Both the position numbers and the translations under genes were made by a program. From Heteronotia binoei (lineage: Eukaryota), in assembly GCF_032191835.1 (NCBI RefSeq), contig NC_083235.1, positions 15,810,001 through 15,874,000 on the forward strand: DNA of 64,000 bases, read 5' to 3'. Every line of letters starts with the position of its first letter. Positions within the stretch are counted from its first letter, which is position 1. This document shows, one piece after another, positions 4,742-45,801 of the stretch. The notes beneath the pieces were generated by a model that did not search any database, had not been told where the DNA came from, and saw only the letters and a program-made list of their open reading frames with translations.

Positions 4742-5960
4742 TGCAAGAGAAAAGGAAGGTCATTCCTTCACACTCCAGGAAATCTGGGAACTGGAGTTCT
4801 GTGAGGTGGGGATCTCTAGTCTGACAGAATTCTCTGCACCCTCACCTCACTGCAGTTGCCAGGATTCCTTGGGGCAACCTGGGACAGTTAGTCATCAAAT
4901 TCACCTCAGTTCATCGTGTAGATATGCTCCTAAGCATTAAAGGAGAATTTTTGAGATTCTGCTGATTTGTCTGGATGAGGAGTTGTTCAGACAGGACAAA
5001 TGGAGCTGTTCAGACAGGGCAAATAGGTACATTTTACTGGAGCCTATGAGTCTTGTATTCTTATGGGTCTTGATTGATTCATGGAGAAGAGGACTATCAG
5101 TGGTGACACCACCAGCGGTGGTGCCACATGCAGAGGCACCATATCTCTGAATCACAGTGCCAGGACTGGAGGCAACATCAGAGGAAGGCCTCTCTGCCCT
5201 GTTGTTGGCCCTTTAGAGGAATTAGTTGTCTGCTGTGTGAGACAGGATGTTGGACTGGATGGGCCACTGCTCTGATCCAGCAGGGCTCTTCTTATATTCT
5301 CATCTGGTCCAGGCTACGAGTCCATCTTATGATTCATGTTATGTCATTTCAGAAATAAAAGAGATGTTTTACCCATGACTCCTGAAATTCTATTGTATGT
5401 ATTACTGTAGGCAACTTCAGCTTGGAAAACTCCTGAAAATTTGGGGGCAGTGACTGAGAGGGTAGAGTTTGAAGTAGGGATGTGATGCTATAGAGTCCAG
5501 TCTCTGAAGTTGTGTTTCTCCAGGGGAACTATCTCTGTCATCTGGAGGTCAGTTGTAATTCTGGGGCAACTCCATGCACACACACACACGCGCGCACACA
5601 TACACATCCTGCCCCCAGAGGCTGCCAACCAGGACTGGCCTAAGGCATGCTGCACCCTAGACAGGCCCGCCTCCCTCGCCTTCCTCCTCTGCTGCACTGC
5701 TTCCCTCTGTGCCATCGCCCCACAGTGCCTCACCCCACCGCTTGCACAGCAAGGGAGGAGATATGGAGATGGGGAGGGTGGCAGGAGACCGAGAAAGCTG
5801 GCAGGTGAGCAAGAAAGCCAGCAGGCAAATGAGAAAGGTGGCAGGTGAGCAAGAAAGCCAGCAGGAGAGCGGGGAAGGCCTCTTTGAGTCACATGGAAGA
5901 CGCCCAATTCGGTGCCCTTCCAGGGCCGGTGTCCTAAGCAAATGCCTAACTTGTCTAATG

Positions 5961-6090
5961 CAGGGGTGGCCTATGGTAGCTCTCCAGATGTCTTTTTGCC
6001 TACAACTCCCATGAGCCCCAGCCAGCATGGCTGAGGCTCATGGGAGTTGTAGGCAAAAAACATCTGGAGAGCTACCGTTGGCCACCCCTG
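5961..6090. mobile_element. hAT-type MITE (CAGGGGTGGCC terminal inverted repeats)
   Basis: CAGGGGTGGCCTATGGTAGCTCTCCAGATG ... CATCTGGAGAGCTACCGTTGGCCACCCCTG; family member at 60184 has an 8-bp TSD. Confidence 0.7.
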
Positions 6091-7249
6091 GCTTGGTGGA
6101 AAGGTCGGCCCTTCTGCCAACCCTCAATGGGATTTTGTGTGTTGTTGGTAGGGAAGGTATTTTACAAGTTTGTAACTGGCCCGGAAAAATAATATTTGGG
6201 CTCCAGGAATCTCCCTTCCACTCTTGCAGTTTTGTAACGTGATTATTGTTGGATATTGTTACTCTGCATGCAAGAGGATCTGGGAAGGAAAGGGTTAAGG
6301 GAATTCTCTCTCTCTCTCTCTCTCTCAGTTGGCCCCATCCTCTCGTTGGTCAGGTGTTGAGCCTCTCTGGCCCTTGCTTGCCTTCTGTGTTTAATTTCAT
6401 ATAGGACCTCTCTTCTTCCCACTCTTACCTGGGCCTGGAATGGTCGCACGTTAACCTTGTTGTTCGCTATTGGTTTTACCACTGAATCTATGAAGGAATT
6501 GGGGCTTGCTCAATCAGCACTTACAATTAAAAAAAAACAGATTAGTCAAATTGATTACAAATGTCCTGTTCTTCATACTCAACAAGTTTGTTCTTCACAA
6601 TTTTGCTCCCCCTGATTCTCTTCCCTTCTTGCTTATCATCTAACCTCACCTGGTCTACTCAGGGCTTTTACATTAGCTAGAATGAATGCCCATTCAACGG
6701 TGGTTATGAAAGACCATTTTTTTGCATCTTTCCTACTCTGATGGAATTTGCTTTTGCTCCCTTGGTAAAATAGGTACAGTCTCTCCTACTTTATTGGAAT
6801 GCTCTCTGTATTGAATTTCATTCTACCGTGGCTGGTGAATATCAATAATTTTAATCCAATCACGGTGGCTTCTTTCCTACTTTCAGATCAAAATCTCAGT
6901 ATAACCTTGGATTTGCAAAAATATTTTATTCCTTTTGCCTTTTGGGAAATTAATAAAGGTTATACAAAATTTCCAATTGTTATACTGCTCCAGGTATTGA
7001 GTCATAGAGCTTTGATTGGACAAAAGAAATAAAATGAATATTATATGTATCATTTGGTTGACTTAAGACTCCTTCCCATAGCTAAGGAAATGAGAACATG
7101 TTTTGGAAGATATTGCTAACCATAGTTTAATCACACCAGAGTTTTTCACCGTGTCTGAATTTAGACATTGTCTGTGATTCATCCAATGGTTGACATTGTA
7201 GAATCTGGGGTGTAAAATTGTGCAGTAAATATGCTTTGATATTCATTTC

Positions 7250-13099: not shown

Positions 13100-13234
13100 C
13101 AGGGGTGGCCAACGGTAGCTCTCCAGATGTTTTTTGCCTACAACTCCCATCAGCCCCAGCCAGCATGGCCAAGGGCTGGGACTGATGGGAGTTGTAGGCA
13201 AAAAACATCTGGAGAGCTACCGTTGGCCACCCCT
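13100..13234. mobile_element. hAT-type MITE inserted in the 5S SINE
   Basis: CAGGGGTGGCCAACGG TIRs; flanks TCTGAGAC / TCTGAGAA (7 of 8 bp TSD match). Confidence 0.75.
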
Positions 13235-13639
13235 GTCTGAGAAGATTGAACCAACCTGGGCTGTTATCCCCCAGATCCAATCCAAAAATCCTATTAAAAC
13301 TAACCACATGATTTGCTGGGCCCTATAGGCTCCCAGGGTACCAGGGACCCCAGAATTTTATCCCCCTCTTGAGTCTAACCTTTGTAACTACTCCATGCTA
13401 TCCAGAAGAGCAGTTTTGGGGTGGCAAGTTTTGCTACTGATAAGAACCACTATGATTTATTTCCTTTACAGCTAAGCTACTGGAATTTATTTTGCTCTGG
13501 ATATCACACTACCAGGGGTACTATAAGCTTCTGATAGCTGCAGTTGCTTGGATGAGTTCCAGTTATTGATTCCTGGGGAAGATGACCAGGGGTGGGAAGA
13601 CTGCAACCTACAACATGCGTGTGGAACCCTTGTTCCTTG

Positions 13640-20941: not shown

Positions 20942-21646
20942 CACTGCAAGTAGACCGAGGAAGGGCTTGCCAGGTGCAATGCTCTGCTTCAAGAGGAGGG
21001 CTGGGATGGTGGACTGAGCAGTGTGGGAGGGCAGGATAAGTCACACCCACAAGTCTCTTTGTTGACTCTCCACCTGCAAGACAGGAAAATGGAGCCATCG
21101 CCACCAGGCATGAGTGCCATGCCAGCCTCAGCCATGGATGTCTTGTCCCGACAGGGTCTTCAATGCAGCCTCATGGGAGAGGCTGACCACCCCCCCACCC
21201 CCCTTGCAGGATGGGACCAGCCAACTTGCACTCATCCATCCCATGGTGAACTGGTCCCGGATTGCTTGCAATTCATCCCCCAGCAGCAGCTGCAGTTGCA
21301 AGGGAATGAGTTAAAGAGACACCCGCCAAACTGAGCAGATGCCAGACCCCCCCACCCCGTCCAACCACAGACATGCCCTGTGCTTTGTCAAGGGTGGGAA
21401 CCAGTGAAACTACAGGATCTTAGCGTACAGCTGTGAAAATAAAAAACTGCTAAGAGACACCATATATTTTAAACAAGACAGTATAATGTAGAGGTCAGTG
21501 GTGTTCTGACCAAGCGTGCACATAGCACTTCAAATCAACAAGAGCGTGTAGCAAAAAGACATTCACAGAAGATACAGTTCAAAAACAGTCTGTCCAATCA
21601 CAAAGGAGTAACAATATTCCAGTATTTAGTTCAAAGAACTAAAGGA

Positions 21647-21713
21647 AGCCCTTCCAAAGACGTCTATTCTAGATATCAAGATGTTTCATCCGTCTTTCTT
21701 CAGTTTGGAGGCT
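21647..21713 (-). ncRNA. Type I hammerhead ribozyme motif (minus-strand copy)
   Basis: AGCCUCCAAA CUGAAGA AAGACGGAU GAAAC AUCUUGAUAUCUAGAAUAGAC GUC UUUGGAAGGGCU: complete core, GUC cleavage triplet, stem I CCAAA/UUUGG. Confidence 0.7.
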
Positions 21714-21868
21714 TATTTATCACTGCAACCCAGTCTTTACAATACAATCATAGAAGACCAACAAGGTCCAGAACATGTCTGTTGGAACCTTGAAATCTAA
21801 TAGACATGTTCTGAACCTTGTTGGTCCTCTATGAATGTATTGCAAAGATTGGGCTCCAGTGATAAATA

Positions 21869-21930
21869 AGCCTCCAAACTGAAGAAAGACGGATGAAACG
21901 ATATCTAGAACAGACGTCTTTGGAAAGGCT
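21869..21930 (+). ncRNA. Type I hammerhead ribozyme motif (plus-strand copy)
   Basis: AGCCUCCAAA CUGAAGA AAGACGGAU GAAACG AUAUCUAGAACAGA CGUC UUUGGAAAGGCU: core CUGANGA/GAAA, stem III ACG/CGU, predicted cleavage after C21918, stem I 5+5 bp with a 2-nt bulge. Confidence 0.75.
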
Positions 21931-22952
21931 TCCTTTAGTTCTTTGAACTAAATACTAGAATATTGTTACTCCTTTGTGATTGGAAGGACTGTTTTTGAAC
22001 TGTCTTTCGTGAATGTCTTTTTGCTACGCGCTCTTGTTTATTTGAAGTTCTGTGTGCAAGCTTGGTCAGAACACCACTGACCATTATACTGTCTTGTTGT
22101 TTAAAATTTATGGTGCCTCTTAGCACTTTTTTAATTTACACAGGGGTGGGAACCAGGCAAATGACAGAGCATCCCCTCACCTCCAGATCTGCAGGGAAAC
22201 TTTTGCCATGGTATATCAGGGGCCAAGGCACTATGTGACCAATGCTTCTTCTGCCCCATACCTATACTCAGTGCTGGGCTTGAGGGTAGGAGCCACTATC
22301 ATGACTCCAGCCTCAAGCAAGAGGAGTGGGGAGCAGGTTTGGGATCCTTTCCCTTGCTTACCTGTCAGCGCACAGTTGCCCCTGTGGGTCAAGCCTCCAC
22401 AGATGAAGTGCCTGTTAGGGCGAGGGTTCTGAAATGGAAAAGATCAGTCATAGAGTACAAACTTTGTGCTCCTCCTTGGGTATCAGTGCAAAGTGTTCGC
22501 CCTGTGGTGCTAAGTGCCCTCTATGTGCTTCTGCCACCACCAAAGTGCCCAAAGTTCCCCACCGCCTGTTTTAAGTCCACATGACAAGGAGCTCTGAGAC
22601 AGAATTCCGTTCTGCACACCCTAACTACTGAGTTGTGAAAAGTCCTGGGGGAAGTTTTTGTGGATGAGGGACTATGAGGGGTGGGCTTGGCTGCCCTAGG
22701 GAGGGAGGGGATTGGCTGAGCCTGTTGTCAGCATCTTGAACTGCTCCAAACCTAGTGCCTTAAAGTGGCAGGGCCTGTAAAATGGAGCTGTTCCGCTAGG
22801 CTTTCAGGTGAGGAGGTAGTAGTCTACCTCAGCTGGCCTCCCTGCCATAATTCCCATTCTGTTGGAGCATCCCTCTGACTCCATCTATGAGGCCTGAAAA
22901 GGTCCCTGTGCAATTGTTGCTGTTTTAATGTTATATTTTAATGATTTTAATT

Positions 22953-23118
22953 NNNNNNNNNNNNNNNNNNNNNNNNNNNNNNNNNNNNNNNNNNNNNNNN
23001 NNNNNNNNNNNNNNNNNNNNNNNNNNNNNNNNNNNNNNNNNNNNNNNNNNNNNNNNNNNNNNNNNNNNNNNNNNNNNNNNNNNNNNNNNNNNNNNNNNNN
23101 NNNNNNNNNNNNNNNNNN
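22953..23118. other. Assembly gap (N run)
   Basis: Run of N. Confidence 1.
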
Positions 23119-23249
23119 AGTTGTTGGACTCTTCTCTTGTTGTAATCCACCCTGAGCCCACTTTTGGGGAGGGTGGAATAAAAATCTAAATAAATAAATA
23201 ATGAATACAGTGGCATATAGAGGTATAGTAGTATAGTCTAGTATAGTGG

Positions 23250-23525
23250 TAGGAGTTTGATCCCGGAGGAAGCTGGGTTCAGGCAGCCGGCTCAAGGTTG
23301 ACTCAGCCTTCCATCCTTCCGAGGTCGGTAAAATGAGGACCCAGCTTCCTGGGGGGAAAGTGTAGATGACTGGGGAAAGTGTAGATGACTGGGGAAAGTG
23401 TAGATGACTGGGGAAAGCAATGGTAAACCACCCCATAAAAAGTCTGCCATGAAAACGTTGTGTTGCAACATCACCCCAGAGTCTGAAACACATGGTGCTT
23501 GCACAGGGGACTACCTTTACCTTTT
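23250..23525 (+). mobile_element. Sauria SINE (5' truncated) with an internal 19-bp triplication
   Basis: GGTTGACTCAGCCTTCCATCC...GCAATGGTAAACCACC...GCACAGGGGACTACCTTTACC tail. Confidence 0.8.
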
Positions 23526-24132
23526 CCTTTATAGTGGTAGTGGCAGGGAACGATTTGATGTAGTTTATACACCATTTAAATGCAACTGAAGCACTTCTAA
23601 TATGGGAAGACGTCAATTTTTATAGAAACAGTTCAACGGAAAGAAACACTAAAGGGTGCCATAATGAAAATTCATAGGTTCATTTATCCCTAGAGAACAG
23701 TCAAGCGGAAAATGAGTGCTAACCAAGCTAAAAGGAGCTGCTTGAACCAGACAGGTTGTGAAATTCAGTCTCATGGTCTTTTCATCTCCTGGCCAAACAA
23801 TTTGTGCCCCACAGATACAACAGTGATCACATATTCTTTTTTTAATTTTAAGTTTCCTTGTACTGACGTGACACTTTTAATTTAAGTAACTCTAGACAAT
23901 TATTGTGTGCTTCTTCACCCAGGTAAAGATTCATATAGTCTGGAAGTGGTATTAATGTTTTAAAAATGAAATCCATGAATGAATGAGTGAGCCAGTGAAT
24001 GAATGAATGAGTGAATTAATGAATGACTGAACGAATGCGGCCCCTTTTGGCCATCCCTTCTTAAGAACACTTCTCAAAGTCACTTATGAAGCATCGGATC
24101 AGGGATGTGCGGGGACCAACATCTCACAGTTG

Positions 24133-25068
24133 TTAGTGAGAAAATGATATCCTACCCAAGAGATTCCTCAGGGCTTTTTGGACCTCTTTATTCCTGAGGC
24201 TGTAGATGTAGGGGTTGGACATTGGGGTGATGATAGTGTACATGAGAGCAAAAATGGTCCCTCGTTGGGAAGAATAGCTGGATGTGGGTAGGAAGTAGAC
24301 CCCAATGATTGCACCATAGAAGAGCACCACCATGGTAAGATGAGAGCTACACGTGGAGAACGCCTTGCGCCTTCCTGAGGCGGAGAACTTCATCACAGCT
24401 GCCACAATGCGGAGGTAGGTGATGATGATGAAGGCAAAGGACCCCAGGATGACAGGCATGCCCTCGAAGAAGATGGCCGCTTCATTGATGCTGGTGTCCG
24501 AGGTGGAGAGCTGGAGCAAGGGCTCGTGGTCACAGAAGTAGAGGGGCAGATGGTTGTCCCCACAATAACTGAGGCGCAGGAGGAGGCCAGCATGCAGCAT
24601 GGAGTGGAGGGTAGAAATGATCCAGCACCCAGCCACCAAGCGTCCGCAGACCTTCCGGTTCATCACGATGGCATAGTGAAGTGGATTGCAAATGGCGACA
24701 TAGCGATCCAGAGCCATAACGCTCACCATGAGAATGTCTGTGATGCCAAACACATAGAAGAAGAAGAACTGAGCCATACAGGAATAGAAAGGGATTGTCT
24801 TGGAAGAGGACATGAAGTGGACCAGCATCTGAGGCACCGTGACTGTGAGGAAGCCCACGTCCACCACGGAAAGGCTCCGCAGCAGGAAGTACATGGGGGT
24901 CTGAAGCCGGGTTTCCACGGTGATGAGAATGAACATCATGATGTTGCCCAGGAGGCCTGCCCCATACATCAGCAGAAAGAAGACGAAGAAGAGAGACTGT
25001 TGTTCAGGTTGTGAGAAGAGACCAAGAAGCACAAACTCCACAACGTCAGTGCCATTCTCACAGTCCAT
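24133..25068 (-). CDS. OR1B1-like: Olfactory receptor OR1B1-like, copy A (311 aa, intact; start MDCENGT)
   Basis: PMYFLLRSLSVVD, AQFFFFYVFG, VMALDRYVAICNPLHYA, IFFEG, SHLTMV match recalled human OR1B1 (PMYYLLRGLSVID, AQFFFFYAFG, VMALDRYVAICDPLHYA, IFFEG, SHLTMV); acceptor CTCTCCACAG 5 nt upstream. Confidence 0.92.
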   Translation of the reverse strand: MDCENGTDVVEFVLLGLFSQPEQQSLFFVFFLLMYGAGLLGNIMMFILITVETRLQTPMYFLLRSLSVVDVGFLTVTVPQMLVHFMSSSKTIPFYSCMAQFFFFYVFGITDILMVSVMALDRYVAICNPLHYAIVMNRKVCGRLVAGCWIISTLHSMLHAGLLLRLSYCGDNHLPLYFCDHEPLLQLSTSDTSINEAAIFFEGMPVILGSFAFIIITYLRIVAAVMKFSASGRRKAFSTCSSHLTMVVLFYGAIIGVYFLPTSSYSSQRGTIFALMYTIITPMSNPYIYSLRNKEVQKALRNLLGRISFSH

Positions 25069-25734
25069 GTGACCTGTGGAGAGAATCACAGTTGGAAGGA
25101 ACCAGGAGGTCTTACAGATCTTGGCAACCCTACAGGAGTTAGGGTTGCCAATCCCCAGGTGGGGACACGGGATTCCCCCAGTTTGGAGGCCCTCCCCCCG
25201 CTTCAGAGTAATCAGAAAGCAGGGTGGGGGATGTCTGCTGGGCACGTCATTATTCCTTATGGAGAACAATTCCCTTAGGGAATAATGGAGAATTGATCCA
25301 CGGGTATCTGGGGTTCTGGGGGGACTGTTTTTTGAGGTAGAGGCACCATATTTTTAGTATAGCATCCAGTGCCTCTCCCCAAAGCACCCTCTAAGTTTCA
25401 AAATGATTGGATCAGGAGGTCCAGTTCTATGAGCCCCAAAAGAAGGTACCCCTATCCTTATTATTTCCAATGGAGGGAAGGCATTTAAATGGTGTGCGGT
25501 CCCTTTAAAAGTGATGGCCAGAACACCCTTTGGAGTTCAATTATGCTTATCATAACCTTGCTTCTGGCTCCACCCCGATGTCTCCTGGCTCCACCCCCCA
25601 AAGTCCCCAGATATTTCTTGAATTGGATTTGGCAACCCTAACAGGAATAGAGTAGAAATTGAGATCTGTGAATCCTTTTTGTCCTACTCTTCAGGGGGGA
25701 GGGTTTTTTTTTTTTTTAAATGCTTATGGAGGAT

Positions 25735-26630
25735 TCAGGGGTGATATGAGAGAGGTTTACAAAATTATGCATGAGATAAAGAAGGCAGAGAAAGAACTAG
25801 TTTTCTCCCTTTCTCGCAGTACAAGAACTCGTGAGCGCTCTATGAAATTAATGAGGAGTACATTTAGAACAGATAAAAGGAAGTTCTTCTTCACCCAGAG
25901 GGCGATTAGCATGTGGAATTCACTGCCACAGGAGGTGGTGGCAGCTGCGAGTATAGATAGCTTCAAGAGGGGATCAGGTAAACATGGAGCAGAGATCCAT
26001 CAGTGCCTGTAGCTACAAGGGGGCCTGTAGGGGCACAGCCCCCCAACTTCTGGGTGGGTTGGCCTGGCTCTGAGCCCCCAACCAGCCCCCGGGGCCTCTG
26101 CCACATCCTCGTGTGTGGGGCGTGTGGCAGATGCAGCCCCCCGTCTCCCATGCAAGTTGAAAGGGCTTACGGCGTTCGGCGATCAGCTGTTCGCCGGGCC
26201 CTTTAATTCACGTGGGAGGCCAGGACTGCTTCTGCTGCTGGCCCCATGTGCTATTTGAGTGGCAGGGAAGGAAGGGCGTTGGCGGTGGTGAGAGTGGCAG
26301 GGAGGGAAGGGAAGGTTGTGCAGGGCAGCGGCTGGTGTGTTGGTAGGTCAGGGTGGCCATGAGAGCAGCTATGGGCTGGGGCTACTGAGTGCCCCCCCTG
26401 ACCTTCCAAATCCTGGCTACTAGCCACAAGGTATACATGGAACACTTTGTCTGGGTCACTGACGATTTGTATTCTTGGTGCTTGGGGTGGAGCAACAGTG
26501 GGAGGTCTTCCGGAGTTCTGGCTCTACTGGTGGACCTCCTGATGGCCCCTGAGTTTTGGGCACTGTGTGACACAGAATGTTGGACTGGATGGGCCACTGG
26601 CCTGATCCAACAGGGCTGCTCTTATGTCCT
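25735..26630 (+). mobile_element. CR1 3' fragment split by another repeat (about 26010-26455)
   Basis: RGDMREVYKIMHEIKK...MWNSLPQEVV at 25740-25990; 3' UTR and TATGT tail at 26460-26630. Confidence 0.75.
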
Positions 26631-27394
26631 TAGGATGCAAAGGTACAACACATATTGTCTTCAGCTTGCATGTAATCAGCTTGATTACAGAACAAAGTTA
26701 GAGTCCAATGGCACCTTTAAGACCAATAAAGTTTTATTCAGGGACACTCCATCAGACAATAGAATGGAATGGCACATGAAAGCGCACACCCTGAATAAAA
26801 CCTTGTTGATCTTAAAAGTGCCATTGGACTCTTAACTTTGTTCTGTTGCTTCAAACCAACACGGCTGCCCACCCGGATATGGTTTGAGTATATATCTTAA
26901 ATGCATGGAAGTCATTTCCTTTCTGCTCTTATCAAACTGATTACAGTATGTGTTGTGCCTCTGCATCCGTTACAGGCATTCTTGAAAATACACCTCCCGC
27001 CTTTGGACCGTTGAAGTGCACGTGGACTCTCAAAAGGTCAGGGCTTTTTTTGTAGCAGGAACTCCTTTGCATATTAGGCCACACACCCATGGTGTAGCCA
27101 TAGGATTGCCAAGTCCAATTCAAGAAATATCTGGGGACTTTGGGGGTGGAGCCAGGAGCAAGGATGTGACAAGCATAATTGAACTCCAAGGGAGTTCTGG
27201 CCATCACATTTAAAGGGACAGCACAACTTTTAAATGCTTTCCTTCCATAGGAAATAATGAAGGGTAGGGGCCAGTCACAGTAGGCCCAGTACGAAGAGCC
27301 CTGTAAGCTCTTGGAAGATTGGCTACATAAGAGGAGTATGGCCTAATATGCAAAGGAGTTTCTGCTACATTAAAAAACCCCTGCAAAAGGTCAT

Positions 27395-27633
27395 TTGTTG
27401 TTCAGTCGCACAGTCGAGTCTGACTCTTTGCGACCCCACGGACAAAGTCACGCCAGGCCCTCCTGTCTTCCACTATCCTCCGAAGTCTGCACAAATTTGT
27501 GTTAGTTACATCAGTAACACTGTCCAACCGTCTCATCTTTTGCCGTCCCCTTCTTCTTTTGCCTTCTGTCTTTACCAGCATCAGGATCTTCTCCAGTGAG
27601 ATCTCCCTTCTCATTGGGTGGCCAAAGTATGGG
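27395..27633 (-). mobile_element. BovB (RTE clade) 3' fragment
   Basis: ORF 27402-27614 SLEKILMLVKTEGKRRRGRQKMRRLDSVT...DRRAWRDFVRGVAKSQTRLCD plus CTGAACAACAA end, the canonical BovB terminus. Confidence 0.9.
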
Positions 27634-29114
27634 AGATCATACAGGACACCAATCTAACTGTTTTCCTGCAGACCACGGTGGCTGGCCCCCTGACACTACT
27701 AAAGTGATTCTCAGCAGGGGTGGAATTCTAGCAGGAGCTCCTTTGCATATTAGGCCACACCCCTCTGATGTAGCCAGTCTTCCAAAAACTTACAAAAAAG
27801 AGCCTTGTAAGCTCATGGAGGATTGGCTACATCAGGGGTGTGTGGCCTAATATGCAAAGGAGCTCCTGCTAGAATTCCACCCCGGGTTCTCAAGAATAAA
27901 GGACTTCAAACATGAAATGCCGTTGCATGGAAATACTTTTCCATGGCTAACACTACAGCAGTTGTCTGCTACTACCTGCTGTTGCGTGTGACCGATCAAA
28001 CACCAGCAAACATTTGAAAATGGTACACTTCAGCTGCGAGTTTAGCCACGTGTGCGCTGCCGAATATTGTAAAAATAATCAAGCAAGAAAATCAAAAGTC
28101 AATACATGTGGTCAGGGGTCATTTTGTAGACAAAGAGGTGCCGGAGCTCATTAGCACACCTCATTTGCACTACTCATTTGCATATGCCACAGACCCCTGA
28201 CATCACCAGAAGGTGTGCTAAATTATATCAGCTCAGCATCTACCTTAAAATGCGTCTTGAATGATAAAAACCTTACTCCCATCAGACTTCTAAAATCACT
28301 TTCTTCTATGTGGCCACAGTGGCATGATGATCTCCATCTGTCTACATGTTTTGGTTATTTTACCATTTTTTGTGGGGGGGGAAATATTAGAAAGTTTATC
28401 AAATCTTAGAGTTCAGCAAGATTCTCACAGGGGGGTTGAACAATGGGGACCAGAAGCAAGGATTTGGGGGGGGGGGGGGCAGGGGGAGAAAGAAAGAGCA
28501 CAATAAAATTTAGAGGTTCCGGAGCTCCACTCCTGTGAGCTGCTGCCCAAAATGAGGCCTGGATGTGGTACATGCTGATATCAAATTCTGCATATCCTGC
28601 CAAAACTAATCCCGCGGAGAATTTTGAAAAAGATCTGGGAGAGGAAGTTCATTTCAGGACTACATAAATTCACTCACAAGTTCCCAGAAATTACCCTGAA
28701 CAATCCTTATTGCCAAATCATCCGCCAATGCCAAATTTCGACTTCTTTCTCATTTTGTATTTGACATGATGTAACTGTGTCAGGTATTTCTACGTTCCTC
28801 AGATCTGGAGGGCAGGGGATGAGAAGTGATCGTTATCATCAGGGCTTGTTTTGTAGCAGGAACTCCTTTGGATATTAGGCTGCACCCCCCCTGATGTAGC
28901 CAATCCTTTTGGAGCTTACAGTAGGCCCTTTACTAAGAGCCCTGTAAGCTCTTGGAGGATCGGCTACATCAGGGGTGTGTGGCCTCATATGCAAAGGAGT
29001 TCCTGCTACAAGAAAAGCCCTGGTTACAATAATAAACTAGTGGTCTTATAGCCCACTTTAGATATGTATATTTCAAATGCTTATCACAGAATGAGCATTC
29101 AACAAGCATGTCTC

Positions 29115-29312
29115 TTTCCATCAAGTTGCACCAGACCTATGGTGACCCCACCAGGTTTTCCAAGGCAAGAGATGAACAGAGGTGGCTTGCTATTGCCTGC
29201 CTCTGCGGAGCAACCCCGGACTTCCTTGGTGGTCTCCCACCCCAGTACTAACCAGGATGGACCCTGCTTAGCTTCTGAGATCTGACGAGATCAGGCTATC
29301 TGGGGCTAGCCA
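29115..29312 (-). mobile_element. 5S rRNA-derived SINE (paralogous copy 41700-41900 +)
   Basis: Reverse complement GCCTGATCTCGTCAGATCTCAGAAGCTAAGCAGGGTCCATCCTGGTTAGTACTGGGGTGGGAGACC is 5S-like. Confidence 0.7.
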
Positions 29313-29619
29313 GGCAAGGCAACATCTCCCCAAGCCAGGGGTGGCCAAACTGCGGCTCAGGAGCCACATGTGGCTCTTTCACACATATTATGTGGCTCTC
29401 AAAGCCCCCACGACCCCCATCTGCTGGCTTTAAATCTCTTTGCCAAGCCAAGCCTTCAGCGGCTTGGAGAATGCATTCAAAGTTAAATTTGCTCTCTTTC
29501 CACCTCTCCCTCCTTCCTCCATCTATTTTCCTTCCTTCCTTCCGTCTTGCAGTTCTCAAACAGCTGACGTTTATTCTACATGACTCTTGCATTAAGCAAG
29601 TTTGGCCATCCTTGCCCTA

Positions 29620-29915
29620 AAAGGTAAAAGTGGTCCCCCTGTGCAAGCACCAGTCGTTTCTGACTCTGGGGTGACGTCGCATCACGATGTTTTCATGGCA
29701 GACTTTTTACAGGGTGGTTTGCCATTGCCTTCCCCAGTCATCTACACTTCCCACCACAGCAAGCTGGGTACTCATGTTACCAACCTCAAAAGGATGGAAG
29801 GCTGAGCCAACCTTGAGCCGGCTACCTGAAGCCAGCTTCTGCCAGGATTGAACTCAGGTCGTGAGCAGAGCTTAGGACTGCAGTACTGCAGCTTTACCAC
29901 TCTGCACCATGGGGC
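29620..29915 (-). mobile_element. Sauria SINE (paralogous copies 35370-35665 - and 41092-41375 +)
   Basis: Full tRNA-like head and ACCTTT tail. Confidence 0.8.
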
Positions 29916-30611
29916 TCTCTCTCCCTGCCCTATACCATGCATATTTGCTCAGAAGAATGTCCAACTGTGGCCAGTTGGGCTCACAGAGAGCTGTGCCTTG
30001 CAAAAGCTCATCTTGAAATAACTATTGATAGTCTTTGAGGCTCTTTTATGTTGTTTTTCTTAGTGACAGGCAGCATTCAAGCCCCCTGTCCCCAGCTGAG
30101 CCTGTGATATGGAACACCAAACTTCTGCCCCAAGATCTGGGCCTGAGGGACTCTCTTTGCCCACCATGTGCCCCCTCCCAGAACTATCCTCTGAACAGTG
30201 TTGTGCCTCTGACTGTTGCACAGATGTTACATACAAACACACTTATGCAGGCTCACTCATTCAGAATCACCTTCCCCTCCTCTCCCCACCACAGGCACCC
30301 TGCAAGGTAGGAAGGGCTGATGGAGCACTGAGAGAACTGTGATTGGCCCAAGGTCACCCAGCAGGCTGCATGTGGATGAGCAGGGGAATGAAACCTGGTT
30401 CTCTGAACAACTACACTGCACTGGCAGATAGCTAGGACATCACAAAAGGAAGAAGACCGGCTCAAAAGACTTCAGCAACACCTTGACCGGTCAAGCCGGT
30501 CAAGCCGGCACAACACTGTTCAGAGGATAGTTCTGGGAGGGGAGCACATGGTGGGCAGAGTGGGTCCCTCAGGTCCAGATTTTGGGGCAGAAGTTTGGTG
30601 TTCCATAGGGG

Positions 30612-30826
30612 AGGGACGGTGGCTCAGTGGTAGAGCATCTGCTTGATAAGCAGAAGGTCCCACGTTCAATCCCTGGCATCTCCAAAAAAGGGTCCAGGCA
30701 AATAGGTGTGAAAAACCTCAGCTTGAGACCCTGGAGAGCCAGTCTGAGAAGACAATACTTACTTTGATGGACCAAGGGTCTGATTCAGTATAAGGCAGCT
30801 TCATATGTTCATATGTTCATGTTCAA
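30612..30826 (+). mobile_element. tRNA-derived SINE (Squam2-like), present only in the left arm
   Basis: GGCTCAGTGGTAGAGCATCTGC A box, GTTCAATCCC B box, (TTCATATG)n tail. Confidence 0.75.
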
Positions 30827-31004
30827 GCCTGATCTCATCAGATCTCGGATGCTAAGCAGGGCCGATCCTGGCAAGTATTTGAATAGGAGACTGTTTTGGA
30901 ATACCAGGACTGGGAGGCAGAGGCAGGATGTATTAAGCCATTTTCTGAATGTCCTCCATGCCCCAGTAGGGGTTGCTAGAATACACCATGACTTCCAGGC
31001 ATGG

Positions 31005-31038
<34 letters not shown>

Positions 31039-31785
31039 TTCAGAGCATGGACACATGATTCTGCCTTATACTGAATCAGACTTCTGGTTCATCTAGATCA
31101 GTATTGTCTACTCAAGCTGGCAGGAGCTCTCCAGAATCTGAGCAGAGGTCTTTCCCATCACCTGCTGCCTGGTCCTTTCCACTGGAGATGCCGGGGATTG
31201 AACTTGGGACCTTCTGCATGCCGAACAGAGGCTCTTCTACTGAACCAGCAGCCCTCCCCTAAAGCAGTCCTTCGTACATGAATACTCTTGAAGTTGCCTT
31301 ATACTGAATCAGACCTTTGGTCCACCAAAGTCAGTATTGTCTGCACAGACTGGCAGCGGCTCTCTAAGGTCTCAGGGGGAGATCTTTCTCATCACCTGGT
31401 CCTTTGGACTGGAGATGCCGGGGACTGAACCTGGGACCTTCTGCATGCCAAGCAGAGGCTCTATCACTGAGCTGTGTCAGGATCTTTCCTATCACCCACT
31501 ACACGGTCCTTTTTAACTGGAGATGCCAGAGATTGAAACTGGGACCTTTTGCATGCCAAAGCAAATGCTCTACTCATCTCCTTTTCTCATGGACACACTC
31601 AAGGACGTGCTGATGTACACAAACACACACATAACCATTTGTACTTCTTTCACCTCAGAAGGACAATTGTACCACTCTTTGCCCGGGGCAAACAATTCAA
31701 ACCCCACCCTCAAGGCGCTACTAGTAGTCAGTGTCTACATGAGAATCTGCAGTAGAATTTTAAAAAATGCGTGGACCAGGTAAAA

Positions 31786-32439
<654 letters not shown>

Positions 32440-32719
32440 AATGTGTGGACCAGATGAAAGGACCAGAGACGGTACGCCATTCCATCCAACCCGTGCCTAC
32501 CTCCGTCCAGACGATCCTGACCTCACCGATCGGCCCTTCTGACATTGAAGAAATGCAGTAAGCAAAAGAGGAATAGCAACAATGCCAGGGAGAATTATTC
32601 TGGGAGTCTTGAAACAGGAAGGCACATTCCCCTTTAAGCCTTCGCACTGTAAATCCCTGAGGATATAAGCACAGAGCCAGAATAGATGCTGTTGGTTTCC
32701 TTCACTGTTCTCTAACTAC

Positions 32720-35368
32720 AAACTCAAAACCCTTGATGCTATAAATGGCTATTTTAAACCCTTTTTTATTAATAGTAGGCCAATTAATTTTAGAGTGTAT
32801 ACTAGCAATGGCTGGTATGATTTGGAATGTAAGGCGACCGAAAAGAGATTACATCGTTAATGAGACTAGCAAGACGTAATAATTATGATTTGCTGATGTC
32901 ACATATTCTGAAAGTTAGGTCTTACTATAAAAATTTAATCAAACAGAAGAAAAGGGAGAATGCCAATTCTTTATGGGATGAGCTTGAATTAGCTGTTTCA
33001 AGGAAAAATGAAACTCGATTTTGGGATATTGTCTCTAATTGTTTTAATAGCTGCCCTCAACAGCTGGATGCACACATCCTCCCAAAGCTTGGGCTCTGCA
33101 TTATAGTCAGGTATTTGGGTTATCTGTAGCTTCTTCCCCTGTAGATATTCCACAATTGCAAAACTTTAATTTTGATATAACAGATCTACCCATGTGGGAA
33201 CTTCAGTCTCGGAGAAAGAGATTGATGGTATAATTAGTTATTTGGCCTCTGGAAAATCTTCTGGGGAAGACTTGATCCCCTCAGACTTCTATAAAGCCTT
33301 TCCCTCATGGTGGTCGCCTGTACTAGCCACAGTTTTTTCACAAATCAATGATACAGGCATAATCCCTTCCGGCTGGAAGCTCAGTATCATCGTCCCTATT
33401 CATAAGAACGAGGTTAAATCAGCTCCTCAGAATTATAGGCCAATCAGCTTGCTTGACATAGCAGCAAAAATATACAGTAAATATTTGCTGTTTAAGCTTG
33501 AGTATTGGGTCATTGAGAGCCATATTATTCACCCACACCAAGCAGGTTTTAGGAAAGGTTTTTGCACTGTTGACCATTGCCATACCCTTCATCATTTGAT
33601 GCATGCCGGCCTAAAAGGTCCCACGAAATCTCTATACGTAACATTTGTGGACCTGGCCGCTGCATTTGATTCTATTGATAGGAACTGTTCATGGCAAAAG
33701 CTATCAGATTTGAATATTGACAAAAGGTTGTTATTTTTGTTACACGAGTTGCATACTAATATTAGTGCTCAAATCAGAGTGGGAACTTCAGGCTCGCTAC
33801 AAAAAGAATCCCAATCTGTAAAGGAGTGAAGCAGGGATGCGTGTTGGCTCCTACTTTGTTTAATCTGCTTATTAATAACGCAGTTGAGAGGTTATCTGGT
33901 CCACAGTTTTTCCCGCCTACTCGTGGAAAGGATAAAATTTCAGTTTTGTTATATGCTGATGATATGGCCCTAATTTCGCTTACCAAATTTGGGATGAGAA
34001 GGTTGTTGCAGCAATTAGGACTATATTGTAAAGAAGAGGCCCTTAACATCAACTATGGCAAGACGAAGGTGATGGTCTTTAGGAAAAGGGCTCAAATATC
34101 ATCCTGGAGTATACTTGGTAACCCAATTAATCAATGTAGCTCCTTCAAATACTTAGGTATTACTTTTAGAGAGAATTTGAACTGGAATGTGCATATTGCT
34201 ACAGTCAAAGCATCTGCTGCGTGGATTGTGGGGGCTTTTCTGAGATTTTATTATACTAAGGGAGGTTTTCTTATTGACCCCGTTCTAAAATTATTCAAAA
34301 GTAAAGTCATACTCCACCTTTGGTACGGTGCCGAGGTCTGGGGATGGAAAGAGGACATCCTCACTGGTGTGGAAACTATCCAAAATCAGTTTTTAAGGCG
34401 CATTCTGGCTTTCCCTAGGGGAACACCGGCTGCCCTGATGAGAGCAGAAACTGGCCTTCCTTCCCTAAGGGCACGGGTACATCTTGCTGTTCTAAAAGCC
34501 TGGAAAACAACAGATCGGTCAGATCTGATTCGTTTAGTCAACTAGCTTTTAACTCAATGTTATCTAATGATCCAGAGCGCCTTAGCTTTTTCAATACTTG
34601 TAAAATATTCTATTCCTGATGACCTTCTTGCTGTCTCAGTAGACAATAGACATCTCAGAGATTGGGTATTCAAGTGCGATGCCACATTAGACAGACAACT
34701 AATTTTAAAATGTCAGTCAGCACTATGGTTTAAATGATTTAAGAATGATCATTCCAGGTCTCCCTACCTGGTTGGTATAGCTAACCATAACCTCAGAGTT
34801 GCCTTCACATCCTTGCGATTTGAAACAATGCCAACGGCAGTGCTCACTGGCTGTTATAGTAAAATACCTAAGGAACAGCGTGTCTGTATTTGTGGCATTT
34901 CTCTTAGTGAAGATTTACCTCATTACATTCTTAACTGTCCATTGTACGCTCAACCCAGGGCAAAAATTCTCTCCGGGATATTAACTAATCTACATGCCTA
35001 TTCAGATTCTGAGAAGATTGTATTTCTGTTAGCTGATTTTGATGCCAATATAGCTCATAGTATGGCATTGTATGCCCTAGCAACGAAGAAATAACGGGCC
35101 AAAGCTGTTTGTACTGGTGCTAATTAACTACTTTTTTGTGGTTATTCTGTGATCGCAATATTTGTTCTTATTTTATGGTGTATTTTGCCCTGGTTTGTTT
35201 CACATGCGGTTTTTTGTATTTGCTTATATTTTTGATGTATTTTTCACAATTTGTCTCATTTATATTTATATATATATATTGTTCCACCTGAACATTTTAT
35301 CTGTGTGATTTTCTTTTTGTTTGCAATGGCCTATGGCTTAACACAAATAAATTACTACTTCTACTTCT
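32720..35368 (+). mobile_element. 5'-truncated, frameshifted non-LTR retrotransposon, RTE-X-like, with RT and C-terminal CCHC zinc knuckle
   Basis: NYRPISLL, QAGFRKG, FVDLAAAFDSI, KQGCVLAPTLF, LLYADD, YLGI, YGAEVWG, RVCICG..EDLPHYILNCPLY; AATAAA plus (TAC/TTC)n tail. Confidence 0.85.
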
Positions 35369-35369
35369 G

Positions 35370-36765
35370 AAGGTAAAAGTGGTCCCCCTGTGCAAGCACC
35401 AGTCGTTTCTGACTCTGGGGTGACGTCGCATCACGATGTTTTCATGGCAGACTTTTTACAGGGTGGTTTGCCATTGCCTTCCCCAGTCATCTACACTTCC
35501 CGCCCCTCAGTAAGCTGGGTACTCATGTTACCAACCTCAAAAGGATGGAAGGCTGAGCCAACCTTGAGCCGGCTACCTGAAGCCAGCTTCTGCCAGGATT
35601 GAACTCAGGTCATGAGCAGAGCTTAGGACTGCATTACTGCAGCTTTACCACTCTGCACCATGGGGCTCTCTATCCCTGCCCTAGACCATGCATAATTGCT
35701 CAGAAGAATGTCCAACTGTGGCCTGTTGGGCTCACAGAGAGCTGTGCCTTGCGAAAGCTCATCTTGAAATAACTATTGTTAGTCTTTGAGACTCATTTAT
35801 GTTGTTTTTCTTAGTGACAGGCAGCATTCAGGCCCCCTGTCCCCAGCTGAGCCTGTGATATGGAACACCAAACTTCTGCCCCAAGATCTGGGCCTGAGGG
35901 ACCCACTTTGCCCACCATGTGCCCCCTCCCAGAACAATCCTCTGAACAGTGTTGTGCCTCTGAGTGTTGCACAGATGTTACATACAAACACACTTATGCA
36001 GGTTCACTCATTCAGAATCACCTTCCCCTCCTCTCCCCACAACAGGCACCCTGCAAGGTAGGAAGGGCTGATGGAGCACTAAGAGAACTGTGATTGGCCC
36101 AGGGTCACCCAGCAGGCTGCATGTGGATGAGCAGGGGAATGAAACCTGGTTCTCTGACTTCCAGGCATGGGCACACACACACACACACAGACTTCAGAGC
36201 ATGGACACATGATTCTGCCTTATACGGAATCAGACCTCTGGTCCATCTAGATCAGTATTGTCGACTCAAGGTGGCAGGAGCTCTCCAGAATCTGAGCAGA
36301 GGTCTCTCCCATCACCTGCTGCGTGGTCCTTTCCACTGGAGATGCCGGGGATTGAACTTGGGACCTTCTACATGCCGAGCAGAGGGTCTTCTACTGAACC
36401 AGCAACCCTCCCCTAAAGCAGTCCTTCATACATGAACACTCTTGAAGTTGCCTTATACTAAATCAGACCTTTGGTCCACCAAAGTCAGTATTTTCTGCTC
36501 AGACTGGCAGCAAGGTCTCAGGGAGAGGTCTTTCACATCACTTGGTCCTTTGGACAGGAGATGCCAGAGATTGAACCTGGGACCTTCTGCATGCCAAGCA
36601 GAGGCTCTACTCATCTCCTTTTCTCATGGACACACTCAAGGACGTGCTGGTGTACACAAACACACATAACCATTTGTACTTCTTTCACCCCAGAAGGACA
36701 ATTGCACCACTCTTTGCCCGGGGCAAACAATTCAAACCCCACCCTCAAGGCGCTTCTAGTAGTCA
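35370..36765 (+). repeat. Third, direct and internally deleted copy of 29620-31735
   Basis: ORFs 30035-30310 and 35786-36061 are near identical; collinear SINE content. Confidence 0.9.
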
Positions 36766-37093
36766 GCTCCCGTGAGCTCCCACTGAATTTGAGACCTGGC
36801 CCTGAAAAGATCAATGGTAAAGCTTCCTTTGGAATCCTGTGTGCAGTCCCTGTGTCTCCAAAAGAACACTGCAGAGCTGGGAAAAGTACAAAGGAGGGCG
36901 ACCAAGATGCTTAGGGGGGTTGGAGCACCTTCCTTGTGAGAAAAGGCTGAAAATACAGCTTATAAACATACAGGCTTTATTCTGTCCTTCAACTGAACAC
37001 CCTTGGGTTGGAAGGGCAGAGACAATGGCCATGGACCCTTTCTCCCCTGCCACACACTCACATGTGGTTATGTCATAGAGGGTAGCAGGGGTA

Positions 37094-37721
37094 GCATCTA
37101 CGGCTCCGAATCGTGGGTTTTATACCGTCATCACCTGCGACTCCTTGAGCGCTGTCATCAGCGCTGCCTTCGCACCATCCTCAACATCCACTGGAGTGAC
37201 TTTGTGACCAACACTGAAGTCCTCAAGAGGGCGGAGGTTACAAGCATCGAGGCATTGCTGTTGAAGACGCAGCTGCGCTGGGCCGGGCATATCTCCAGGA
37301 TGGAAAACCACCGCCTTCCCAAGATTGTCCTGTATGGCGAACTTTCCACCGGCCATCAAAATAGAGGGGCACCAAAGAAGAGGTACAAGGACTCCTTGAA
37401 GAAATCCCTTGGTACCTGTTGCATTAACCATCACCAGTGGTCTGACCTAGCCTCAGATCGCAAAGCATGGAGGCACACCATCCACCAGGCTGTCTCTTCC
37501 TTTGAGAACGCACGCATAGCTGGTCTTGAGGACAAAAGGAGATCGAGGAAGAATCGTACTGCTATAGCACCAACCCCAAATCAGACTTTTCCCTGCAGCC
37601 ACTGTGGCCGGACCTGCCTGTCCCGCATTGGTCTTGTCAGCCACCAGCGAGCCTGCAACAGACGTGGACTACTGCACCTTTCTTAAATCTTCGTTCGCGA
37701 AGTCAAGCCGAGAGAGATAGA
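37094..37721 (+). mobile_element. RTE-clade LINE 3' fragment (non-BovB, with C-terminal C2H2-like finger)
   Basis: YGSESWVLYRHHLRLLER..LRWAGHISRM..RYKDSLK..FPCSHCGRTCLSRIGLVSHQRAC; open to the stop codon; (GA)n tail. Confidence 0.9.
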
Positions 37722-38480: not shown

Positions 38481-38949
38481 TTCCACTTCCTTGATTCTAT
38501 CCTGCAAAGTATTGACCTGCTTATCGCATTGTATTCTACCAATCCCTCCTCTCATGCTCATTTCCACTACAGTTTCTCAGTCGAACTCCCATCTCCCTAA
38601 ACTAGAGACTGAAAGTCCAGCACAGGGAGAAGAGATGGAGACACCATTTTTAAAAGTTTGAGTTAGTACTTAGACAACAGTGAAGGAAACCAACAGCATC
38701 TATACTGGCTCTGTGCTTATATCCTCGGGGATTTACAGTGCTAAGGCTTAAAGGGGAACCTGCCTTCCTGTTTCAAAACTCCCAGAATAATTCTCCCTGG
38801 CATTATTACTATTCCTTTTTTGCTTAGTGCATTTCTTCAATGTCAGAAGGGCCGATCGGTGAGGTCAGAATCGTCTGGACGGAGGTAGGCACGGGTTGGA
38901 TGGAATGGCGTACTGTCTCTGGTGCTTTCATCTGGTCCACACATTTTTT

Positions 38950-39555
38950 CCCCAGGATTTAAAACATTTTATTTGCATATTTAAAAAATTGTGCATTCCA
39001 ATAATTAAAATCATTTGAACAAGAAAAAAATGGCACTCGCTTAAGGGCATTTTACAGCTTGCGGGACCATGGCACAGTTTTGTGTGTATTCCTGTGTTAC
39101 TAGATGACTGTAGTCCCACCTGGGATCTTCTTTCAGGAAACATGCAAGCTCTTCTTGCCATCAGGACCAAAGCTGGACAGGCAGAGGGAAAGGGTAGCGC
39201 CTTCGTGCAGCATCAGTAGTTCTCTCTCTCTATGCATTTTTGGATGTGAAAGGGGCAGGTCAGTCCTTTGAACTTTAGCCGACCTCTCTGCATCTTGCCG
39301 AGTTAAAACAGCTAAAAGAAGTAAAATAAGCAGGCGATGCTTGTGGAATGTACAGTGCATAATCTGCAAGGGCTGATTTCATTCTGATTCACCCGCTCGC
39401 TTCTCCTATTCAATTGTTTCCTTTGAAGGCAATGGGCTCTTCTCTTGCATTCCTGTCTTCTTCAACTTAGACTTACAAATTTCTCAATTTCAGCCATATC
39501 TGGTTTATCAGACATATTTACCAATTAATCAGTGATGCTTTGCTCCGGAGGGTAG
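38950..39555 (-). pseudogene. TMSB4X: Second thymosin beta-4 retrocopy, frameshifted (CDS remnant 39379-39515)
   Basis: [13 protein letters not shown], then a 1-nt deletion (TTTGTAAG), plus CAG>TAG at the Q37 codon; TSDs 38926-38949 and 39556-39579. Confidence 0.92.
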
Positions 39556-40299
39556 TTTTACCTGGTCCACGCATTTTTTAAAATTCTACTGCAGATTCTC
39601 CTGTAGACACTGACTACTAGAAGCGCCTTGAGGGTGGGGTTTGAATTGTTTGCGCTGGGCAAAGAGTGGTACAATTGTCCTTCTGGGGAGAAAGAAGGAC
39701 TAATGGTTATGTGTGTTTGTGTACACCAGCACGCCCTTGAGTGTGTCCATGAGAAAAGGAGATGAGTAGAGCATTTGCTTTGGCACGCAGAAGGTCCCAG
39801 TTTCAATCTCTGGCATCTCCAGTTAAAAAGGACCATGTAGTGGGTGATAGGAAGGATCCTGACACAGCTCAGTGGTAGAGCCTCTGCTTGGCATGCAGAA
39901 GGTCCCAGTTTCAGTCCCTGGCATCTCCAGCCAAAGAACCAAGTGGTGTGAAAGACCTCTCCCTGAGAGCTTGGAGAGTTGCTGCCAGTCTGTGCAGACA
40001 ATACTGACTTTGGTGGACCAAAGGTCTGATTCAGTATAAGGCAACTTCAAGAGTGTTCATGTATGAAGGACTGCTTTAGGGGAGGGTTGCTGGTTCAGTA
40101 GAAGAGCCTCTGCTCGGCATGCAGAAGGTCCCAAGTCCAATCCCCGGCATCTCCAGTGGAAAGGACCAGGCAGCAGGTGATGGGAAAGACCTCTGCTCAG
40201 ATTCTGGAGAGCTGCTGCCAGCCTGAGTTGACAATGCTGATCTAGATGGACCAGAGGTCTGATTCAGAATAAGGCAGAATCATGTGTCCATGCTCTGAA

Positions 40300-40335
<36 letters not shown>

Positions 40336-42689: not shown

Positions 42690-43139
42690 TACCATACCAA
42701 ACCTTTAATGGCATAACAGTTGCAAATAAAAATACATAGAATATAAAAATTTAAACATTGGCAATAAAATCAAAATGAAACCGAGCTTACAGATGCATTC
42801 GTACATGGTCAGATTTAGATTTAAGGATGTCAGCCAAAAATTTTCCCACAGCCTTGCTAACCTCCCCCTGAGTATCGTTCAATAAATAACAACAGGGTTT
42901 CAGAATAGAAAGCTTGTGAAATAAATCTTTGCGGAGATAATGATAAAAGGAACAATCAAGCAATATTTGCTGAATTGAGTCGGGAATATTCGCTCCACAG
43001 GAACAGAGTCTGTCGCCTAAAGGGACTCGATGATATCTCCCTTGTAAAACTTTGGAGGGAAACACATTTAGTCTAGCCAACATAAATGCCCTGCGATGAC
43101 TTGCAATGGTTAAGTCTGATAGATAATGGGCATTCTTTG
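42690..43139 (-). mobile_element. RTE-X-like LINE 3' fragment (right arm only)
   Basis: HRRAFMLARLNVFPS..GRYHRVPLGDRLCSCG..DSIQQILLDCSFY is homologous to the 34780-35094 C-terminus. Confidence 0.7.
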
Positions 43140-45650: not shown

Positions 45651-45801
45651 ACCACTTTACTAGACCATACTACTATACCATTATATACCACTATACTCAC
45701 TATTTATTTATTTAGATTTTTATTGCACCCTCCCCAAAAGTGGGCTCAGGGTGGATTACAACAAGAAAAGAGTCCAATAACTCTTTCCAATAAAATTCAG
45801 C

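Follow-up and report, generated by a model that had tools for sequence, protein, structure and literature searches.

Insertions of Penelope-like elements (PLEs) are highly 5'-truncated and often lie next to an inverted, likewise 5'-truncated copy (Craig et al. 2021, PMC8557442); they bear a tail of 30-40 bp at a single end and are flanked by target-site duplications (TSDs) of variable length (PMC8557442). A PLE protein of Anolis acts on both strands of the DNA, each of which it nicks and extends (Frangieh et al. 2024, PMC11167929), and reverse transcription starts at two adjacent internal sites of the RNA, the tail being the sequence between them (PMC11167929). Here we describe a fold-back element at 21392-22156 of a 64,000-nucleotide stretch of the gecko Heteronotia binoei (NCBI RefSeq assembly GCF_032191835.1, contig NC_083235.1, positions 15,810,001 to 15,874,000, forward strand), which is called the window below and in whose own numbering positions are given. 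The element carries a hammerhead-type motif in each of its two arms and is very probably an old fold-back insertion, now inert, from a PLE family found in abundance in the genome of this gecko. It was assigned to the PLEs because of the insertion architecture together with the motif.

Upon comparison with described PLE insertions (Evgen'ev & Arkhipova 2005; PMC8557442; PMC11167929), the locus was found to be similar but not identical. As in those insertions, truncated copies lie head to head, the TSD belongs to the variable-length type, extra nucleotides are present at one end only, a hammerhead motif lies on the sense strand upstream of the 3' end, and the copy number of the family is high. 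In contrast to them, the locus contains neither an open reading frame (ORF) for a reverse transcriptase (RT)/GIY-YIG protein nor a tandem of pseudo-long terminal repeats (pLTRs), and an autonomous partner was not found among the loci that we fetched. The extra stretch measures 26 nt here compared with the published 30-40 nt, and both arms are truncated at one point, which gives a near-perfect hairpin.

The closest described ribozymes are the minimal hammerhead ribozymes (min-HHRs) of metazoan PLEs, which have a stem II of 6-8 bp closed by G10.1-C11.1, almost no stem III and a short palindromic loop, and which are thought to work as dimers and show low activity in vitro (PMC4209133; review PMC6765202). 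The motifs of the window resemble them in the type I topology, the complete core, the unpaired nucleotide between A9 and position 10.1, the short stem I (5-6 bp) and the placement in a PLE non-coding terminal region; they differ in that stem II is reduced to a single A-U pair, while stem III in the window family is a hairpin of 6 bp closing a 13-nt loop. The RAGATH-1 model (RF03152) is similar in its 1-bp stem II, which closes a 7-nt loop, in its stem I of 5 bp and in its long stem III, although its closing pair is G-C rather than the A-U found here and its upstream hairpin is unmatched; this likeness is an analogy of layout, not membership. The third comparison is the hammerhead of Poseidon_Ac from Anolis carolinensis, which is reportedly inactive alone, requires the PLE protein for cleavage and is not needed for insertion in vitro (PMC11167929). 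It is likewise a squamate PLE hammerhead, but it consists of stems I and II with no stem III and overlaps the ORF start, whereas the motifs of the fetched PLE loci lie downstream of the ORF stop. By analogy with Poseidon_Ac, protein-dependent cleavage could explain the persistence of weak variants.

The two arms of the element are reverse complements of each other, with 319 of 360 alignment columns identical (89%); among the 344 aligned positions there were 24 mismatches (14 of them transitions), and five indels accounted for a further 16 nt. The feature positions are collected in Table 1. The flanking direct repeat GGGTGGGAACCAG occurs only twice within the 64-kb window. Its right copy directly adjoins the arm end, and its left copy is set off from the arm by the 26-nt stretch. 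Against the arms, this stretch gave no significant match, its likeness to the arm 3' end (TCTTAGC...ACAG) included, and it was absent among the listed loose ends of other family copies in contigs. An A-rich or microsatellite 3' tail was not present at the element, and the window contained neither a second copy of the arms nor a paralogous empty site. The longest ORF of the element measured 63 aa and no RT/GIY-YIG ORF was found at the locus, as expected of a truncated copy. An earlier sequence-only reading of this DNA had described a hairpin with a 9-nt loop, a flanking 13-bp direct repeat and no ORF, and each of these points was confirmed.

Table 1. Features of the fold-back element, in positions of the window.
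Feature	Position	Strand	Remarks
Left TSD copy	21392-21404	.	GGGTGGGAACCAG; exact 13-mer; 16 nt from 21389 with one mismatch
One-sided 26-nt extra stretch, candidate PLE tail	21405-21430	.	Outside the inverted repeat
Left arm, 5'-truncated 3'-terminal ~350 nt of the family	21431-21786	sense -	3' end = 21431
Hammerhead-type motif, left arm	21653-21709	-	C17 = 21659
Head-to-head junction spacer, 9 nt	21787-21795	.	
Right arm, 5'-truncated copy of the same family as the left arm	21796-22143	sense +	3' end ~22143
Hammerhead-type motif, right arm	21873-21924	+	C17 = 21918
Right TSD copy	22144-22156	.	GGGTGGGAACCAG; exact 13-mer

Both arms, read outward, contain the series UCCAAA, CUGAAGA, AAGACGGAU, GAAA, stem III, GUC and UUUGGA. 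When compared with the core standard (C3 U4 G5 A6 N7 G8 A9, G12 A13 A14, A15.1-U16.1 and H17), the type I hammerhead core (CUGAAGA, GAAA and GUC) was complete, in the right order and in register in each arm, and UCCAAA/UUUGGA formed a stem I of 6 bp. Stem II was reduced to 1 bp, as the linker AAGACGGAU gives a single A-U pair followed by G·A, which is below the usual minimum of 2 bp; the usual closing pair G10.1-C11.1 is replaced by A-U in the window family. The full core, the stem I, the 1-bp helix II and the outward orientation had all been recognized in the sequence-only reading, and they stand. Its description of two intact ribozymes does not, because stem III is damaged in each arm. In the right arm a private 5-nt deletion following 21899 leaves a stem III of 3 bp, and in the left arm stem III comprises 2+3 bp with an A·C mismatch that is consistent with CpG decay. 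Nearly all other family copies contain five more nucleotides after 21899, of which GTCTT is the commonest version and ATCTT is that of the left arm, and in the family stem III pairs over 6 bp (ACGUCU/AGACGU) around a 13-nt loop. Where other copies are listed with variants inside the motif, these affect N7, loop 2, loop 3 and CpG sites.

A relaxed descriptor (the core, with stems I, II and III of at least 5, 1 and 2 bp, respectively) matched only these two sites on both strands of the 64-kb window (128 kb), and 0.195 matches per 126 kb would be expected in dinucleotide-shuffled sequence. The hammerhead-constrained folds of the two motifs reached -7.2 and -6.8 kcal/mol, versus minimum free energy (MFE) folds of -14.7 and -14.1 kcal/mol. 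In the right-arm MFE fold, AGACG of the linker pairs with CGUCU at the cleavage site; in that of the left arm, the GAAA box is sequestered in a GGAUG/CAUCU hairpin. The whole hairpin folds at -508 kcal/mol on the plus strand and -526 kcal/mol on the minus strand, and a search of its centre against Rfam returned only spurious microRNA-like matches.

The complementarity behind the right-arm fold is also visible in the family as a whole, where the stem II linker AAGACG (21886-21891) is complementary to CGUCUU in the cleavage-site region (21915-21921). In the PLE of Eublepharis (L006:7904-7953), the complementarity is between the linker AGUCC and the 3' strand of stem I. Linker pairing in the two families may be a shared inactive alternative fold or a coincidence. 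Several other parses were examined by hand and rejected: a register in which AAGACG/CGUCUU forms stem II and the downstream GGAAAGG supplies the GAAA box, GAAACGUC as a min-HHR, a type III topology, and a helix II or helix III dimer. Each alternative register fails on stem I, on A14 or on the adjacency of 11.1 and G12, and no register was found in which two copies would extend stem III.

We compared the motif with those of five named squamate PLE families (Paroedura picta, Eublepharis, two from Anolis, and Zootoca) and one Logan contig (L008), which were chosen from the HMMER matches to a PLE endonuclease remnant elsewhere in the window (266 proteins). Each of these loci contained one motif, on the sense strand and downstream of the stop of the RT/GIY-YIG ORF, at a distance of 215-620 nt in the five named families (614 nt in every Paroedura unit) and of ~380 nt in the Logan contig. 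The core was present with an unpaired A after A9, and all core nucleotides were kept in seven of the eight motif sequences, which represent seven families. The exception was L008, which reads CUGUUGA, with A6 replaced by U. Stem III measured 6 bp in five of the six loci and 5 bp in Anolis-1, with a loop of 11-17 nt, and stem I ranged from 2 to 7 bp. The length of stem II differed between families, with 5 bp in Zootoca and Anolis-2, 3 bp in L008, 2 bp in Anolis-1, Eublepharis and Paroedura (in the last as two A-U pairs) and 1 bp in the window family. The gecko motifs have the loop-3 string AUCUAGA in common.

The stems covary across these families. Across all seven, stem III positions 15.2-15.6 were paired in 94% of cells, versus 31-51% when the partner strand was slid by 1-3 positions, counts that are somewhat generous because the U16.1 position was picked to maximise pairing. 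Pairs were counted with our own script, and a MAFFT alignment of the eight motifs was set aside as it misplaced the GAAA boxes. Stem III pairs change on both sides, so that 15.4-16.4 is U-A, G-C or A-U; the pair 10.1-11.1 switches between G-C and A-U; and stem I covaries as well. By chance, a stricter descriptor (stem I of at least 4 bp, stem III of at least 5 bp) would be expected 0.01 times per 126 kb. Even so, the pairing counts leave little room for chance, and the hairpin motif is to be placed in a squamate PLE hammerhead lineage rather than regarded as a chance string; such a membership supports the PLE origin of the arms. The proposal of the sequence-only reading, a hammerhead-bearing retroelement of the Penelope type, holds on the strength of the layout downstream of squamate RT/GIY-YIG ORFs and the covarying stems. 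What it called typical of that type requires some division. The reduced helix II is real in this sequence but is not typical of published Penelope hammerheads (PMC4209133, PMC6765202); a palindromic, reduced stem III is indeed published for PLE hammerheads, but the window family has a 6-bp hairpin in its place.

Two of the compared loci deserve a separate description. In Paroedura picta (L002-L004, GCA_049243985.1), we observed arrays of an apparently recently active PLE, in tandem and head to head, with units of ~3,368 bp that are 99.5% identical and contain identical 650-aa ORFs; the hammerhead-type motif is the same in all units, and its stem II consists of the two A-U pairs only. In L002, an inverted 5'-truncated copy (5686-6520) adjoins a direct copy. 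The Logan contig (L008:3021-3081, SRR13336339) is a full-length PLE contig with a three-stem motif in which the normally invariant A6 is the altered nucleotide.

The parent family was examined in contigs of four public runs, which were aligned to the right arm at a likeness of at least 80%. Arm-matching contigs numbered 119-128 in each metatranscriptome run and 10 in the run that is apparently filed as DNA, with 80-99% identity; the runs derive from coded organisms, possibly a related species rather than that of the window. Coverage by family contigs breaks off at 22140-22143, past which the loose ends all differ, which places the 3' end of the family at this point and shows that the TSD and the flank are not part of it. 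Some contigs extend 394 and 1,146 nt past the arm inner end, so that the arms look like 5'-truncated pieces of something longer. In the contigs the family is present mostly as single-orientation pieces of varied length, with the highest depth over the block 21855-21930. The unique flank 22155-22200 had zero depth in all runs, and there was no sign of transcription of the locus. Exact-pattern scans of metagenome contigs (two patterns) and of viral contigs returned no match. Contig ends near 21916-21917 were considered as evidence of cleavage and rejected, since they are also found in the run apparently filed as DNA and lie on the palindrome AGACGTCT, a place at which an assembly graph would be likely to break.

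The right arm deviates from nearly all family contigs at 12 sites. In six of them the left arm is like the family, and the change is private to the right arm; in the remaining six the two arms have the same letter. The shared markers, together with the symmetric truncation and the single flanking duplication, indicate one insertion event from one template. Both arms point to such a single event, since which they have diverged by ~7% between each other. The insertion of one fold-back unit, as the sequence-only reading had it, is upheld by the 13-16 bp TSD, the one-sided extra stretch, the symmetric arms and the six shared variants.

We also observed in each arm an ATG that lies 34 nt ahead of the arm 3' end (22110-22143 on the plus strand and 21431-21464 on the minus strand), from which a frame stays open to the arm end (MVPLSTFLIYT and MVSLSSFLFSQ); in the left copy this frame meets a stop within the 26-nt extra stretch. 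The 3' end of the window family may include its own ORF start, by analogy with the Anolis PLE, in which the start of reverse transcription lies only a short way into the ORF of the next unit. In Paroedura, the insertion end lies ~155-168 nt past the predicted cleavage site, near the start codon of a small upstream ORF.

With its 3' ends pointing outward, a TSD of 13-16 bp and 26 extra nucleotides on one side, the locus shows the PLE signature, and its formation could be explained as follows. An RT/GIY-YIG protein would nick both DNA strands with a stagger, and the nicks would prime reverse transcription, which would begin at internal sites of the element RNA; use of a second start site would leave a tail on one side. 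Mirror-image arms with the same truncation point could then arise if the cDNA snapped back or the template was switched, a step that we infer. Each arm received the family's hammerhead-type motif from the parent element. There it is located ~225 nt before the 3' end, and presumably it acts on the element transcript, possibly only with the help of protein. In a transcript that runs across both arms, the motifs would be locked in a duplex of ~350 bp. Given the damaged stem III of both arms, the single A-U pair of stem II and this burial in a duplex, no ribozyme activity is expected. Likewise, no host function is expected at the locus, which would most likely do nothing; a role in self-cleavage or as a source of double-stranded or small interfering RNA near an olfactory receptor (OR) gene is speculation and found no support.

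Several results weigh against the origin from a PLE. No full-length copy of the window family was found, the arms showed no blastn similarity to any of the PLE loci fetched or to the degraded PLE of the window, and the 26-nt stretch could not be traced to the element. The layout here is also the opposite of that published for metazoan PLE hammerheads, in which stem II is long and stem III minimal (PMC4209133). A search of the region and of each motif against Rfam gave no match to the Hammerhead_1, Hammerhead_3, Hammerhead_II, HH9 or HH10 models, and the sole model that aligned was RAGATH-1, with 15.9 bits in the right arm and 21.6 bits in the left against a gathering score of 56.3. The generosity of the pairing counts and the provenance of the run contigs, both described above, belong on the same side.

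The alternative that survives best concerns function only and is compatible with PLE identity. It holds that the motif is a decayed or non-catalytic relic, that the family multiplied with no functional ribozyme, and that the conserved block serves protein binding, the folding of the RNA for reverse transcription, or nothing; we consider this a serious contender that falls just short of even. It is favored by the 1-bp stem II with its A-U closing pair, by Rfam scores of 16-22 bits versus a gathering score of 56, and by the right-arm MFE fold, in which the linker pairs with the cleavage site and no hammerhead is formed. In addition, hammerhead mutants leave PLE insertion in vitro unaffected and some successful PLE clades are without hammerheads (PMC11167929, PMC8557442). 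However, the retention of every core nucleotide in seven of eight motif sequences, the covariation of stems I and III across families, the positions of the listed variants of other copies (N7, loop 2, loop 3 and CpG sites) and the unchanged motif in every unit of the apparently recently active Paroedura element all argue against decay.

The sequence-only reading had favored a non-autonomous ribozyme-bearing element. On this view the locus could be an animal (non-long-terminal-repeat) retrozyme, a short repeat with a hammerhead that propagates by way of circular RNA, and not a truncated copy of a long PLE. The element does lack an ORF, and a recent preprint derives vertebrate retrozymes from PLE pLTRs (10.64898/2026.07.22.740005). 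Nevertheless, this explanation is unlikely: there is no tandem array but only two inverted copies, with no other in the window, and family contigs continue 394-1,146 nt past the arm inner ends. The stable monomeric stem III is also unlike the dimer-dependent hammerheads of retrozymes (PMC4209133).

Fold-back of a non-PLE retroposon, such as the 3' end of a short or long interspersed nuclear element (SINE or LINE), with a hammerhead-like string arising by chance, would account for the failure of the arms to match any fetched PLE sequence, and LINE remnants are frequent in the window. We regard it as distinctly improbable, as the chance of the motif in a search space of ~700 nt is ~1e-3, a gecko PLE has this layout as well and shares the loop-3 string AUCUAGA, and the element is without an A-rich or microsatellite 3' tail. 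Twin priming by LINEs, moreover, yields non-overlapping inverted segments rather than mirror-image arms. Finally, a miniature inverted-repeat transposable element (MITE) of the DNA-transposon type, or a palindrome from a replication or repair error, is hardly credible despite the long hairpin structure and the presence in the window of true MITE-like hairpins with CAGGGGTGG termini, because the TSD is 13-16 bp instead of a short fixed 2-10 bp, the 26 extra nt on a single side make the ends asymmetric, the family exists in contigs mostly as single-orientation pieces of varied length, and the element has no similarity to the MITEs of the window.

The window is an OR gene cluster in which the fold-back element is intergenic. 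The locus of a paralogous OR protein (L001) overlaps it with 100% identity, which puts the window at ~15.81-15.87 Mb of CM063337.1 in assembly GCA_032191835.1. The nearby OR gene that the sequence-only reading placed about 2 kb away is indeed there, at 24133-25068 on the minus strand, and ends 1,977 bp from the element; the closest named relatives of its protein are gecko proteins (Gekko, Euleptes and Paroedura) with 84-86% identity. An inverted segmental duplication (23119-32728 versus 38657-45782, 92-93% identity) contains this gene and a paralogous OR gene at 43873-44808 on the plus strand, whose proteins are 95% identical. The left boundary of the duplication adjoins a run of N at 22953-23118, ~1 kb from the hairpin, and the hairpin has no counterpart opposite.

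The window also contains a degraded PLE at 46974-48546 (plus strand), with a 3' untranslated region (UTR) to ~49700. Its RT is present in two pieces (46974-47171 and 47414-47695) with an interruption of ~235 bp between them (47175-47410), and the remnant of its GIY-YIG endonuclease (48085-48543) has a Cys pair between GIY and YIG. The RT and endonuclease pieces were identified as PLE because of the HMMER matches, the long ones among which consist of RT plus GIY-YIG; Pfam was blind to both kinds of degraded piece, and a separate homologous-protein search with the endonuclease remnant gave no matches. The 3' UTR showed no clean hammerhead core. A 13-nt identity between the arm (AAGCCTCCAAACT) and this UTR is at chance level (E = 0.76) and was rejected, and the local alignment of the two does not beat shuffled sequences.

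Three short MITE-like hairpin repeats (13100-13235, 60174-60329 and 27717-27883) have loops of 9-12 nt, and their termini resemble the target-site repeat of the element (CAGGGGTGGGAACC), which we take as coincidence. LINE-type sequences were found at 33194-34545 and 37003-37686 on the plus strand, comprising an RT remnant (RVT_1, with a YADD motif) and a LINE C-terminal region. They are flanked by 171-nt inverted repeats (36596-36766 and 39610-39780) that are part of the segmental duplication.

A PLE fold-back insertion is of a known kind, and the near-absent stem II alone is unusual. The locus itself, a dead PLE fold-back in intergenic DNA of an OR cluster, is of little import, but it is a clean example of the PLE insertion signature, which recent biochemistry explains by nicks that prime synthesis on either strand and by reverse transcription that sets in at internal sites. 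It is possible, though doubtful, that squamate PLEs, and those of geckos most strongly, carry an undescribed hammerhead lineage in which stem III stays stable at 6 bp and loop 3 is large while stem II erodes from 5 to 1 bp; the lineage was set against the variants of Lunse et al. 2017 only as these are presented in the review PMC6765202, and such variants may be in the Lunse set. Families with almost no stem II have still amplified, as is evident from the 99.5% identity of the Paroedura units and from the 119-128 contigs of the window family per RNA run. If it is true that such stem-II-poor RNAs cleave, the PLE protein or a tertiary contact must replace stem II, and the motif would be a natural protein-dependent "minizyme". 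Unlike the min-HHR, the PLE hammerhead of lizards and geckos possesses a genuine stem III, and its stem II fades in families that multiplied, which bears on whether PLE hammerheads are needed for transposition or are passengers that cleave only with the help of protein.

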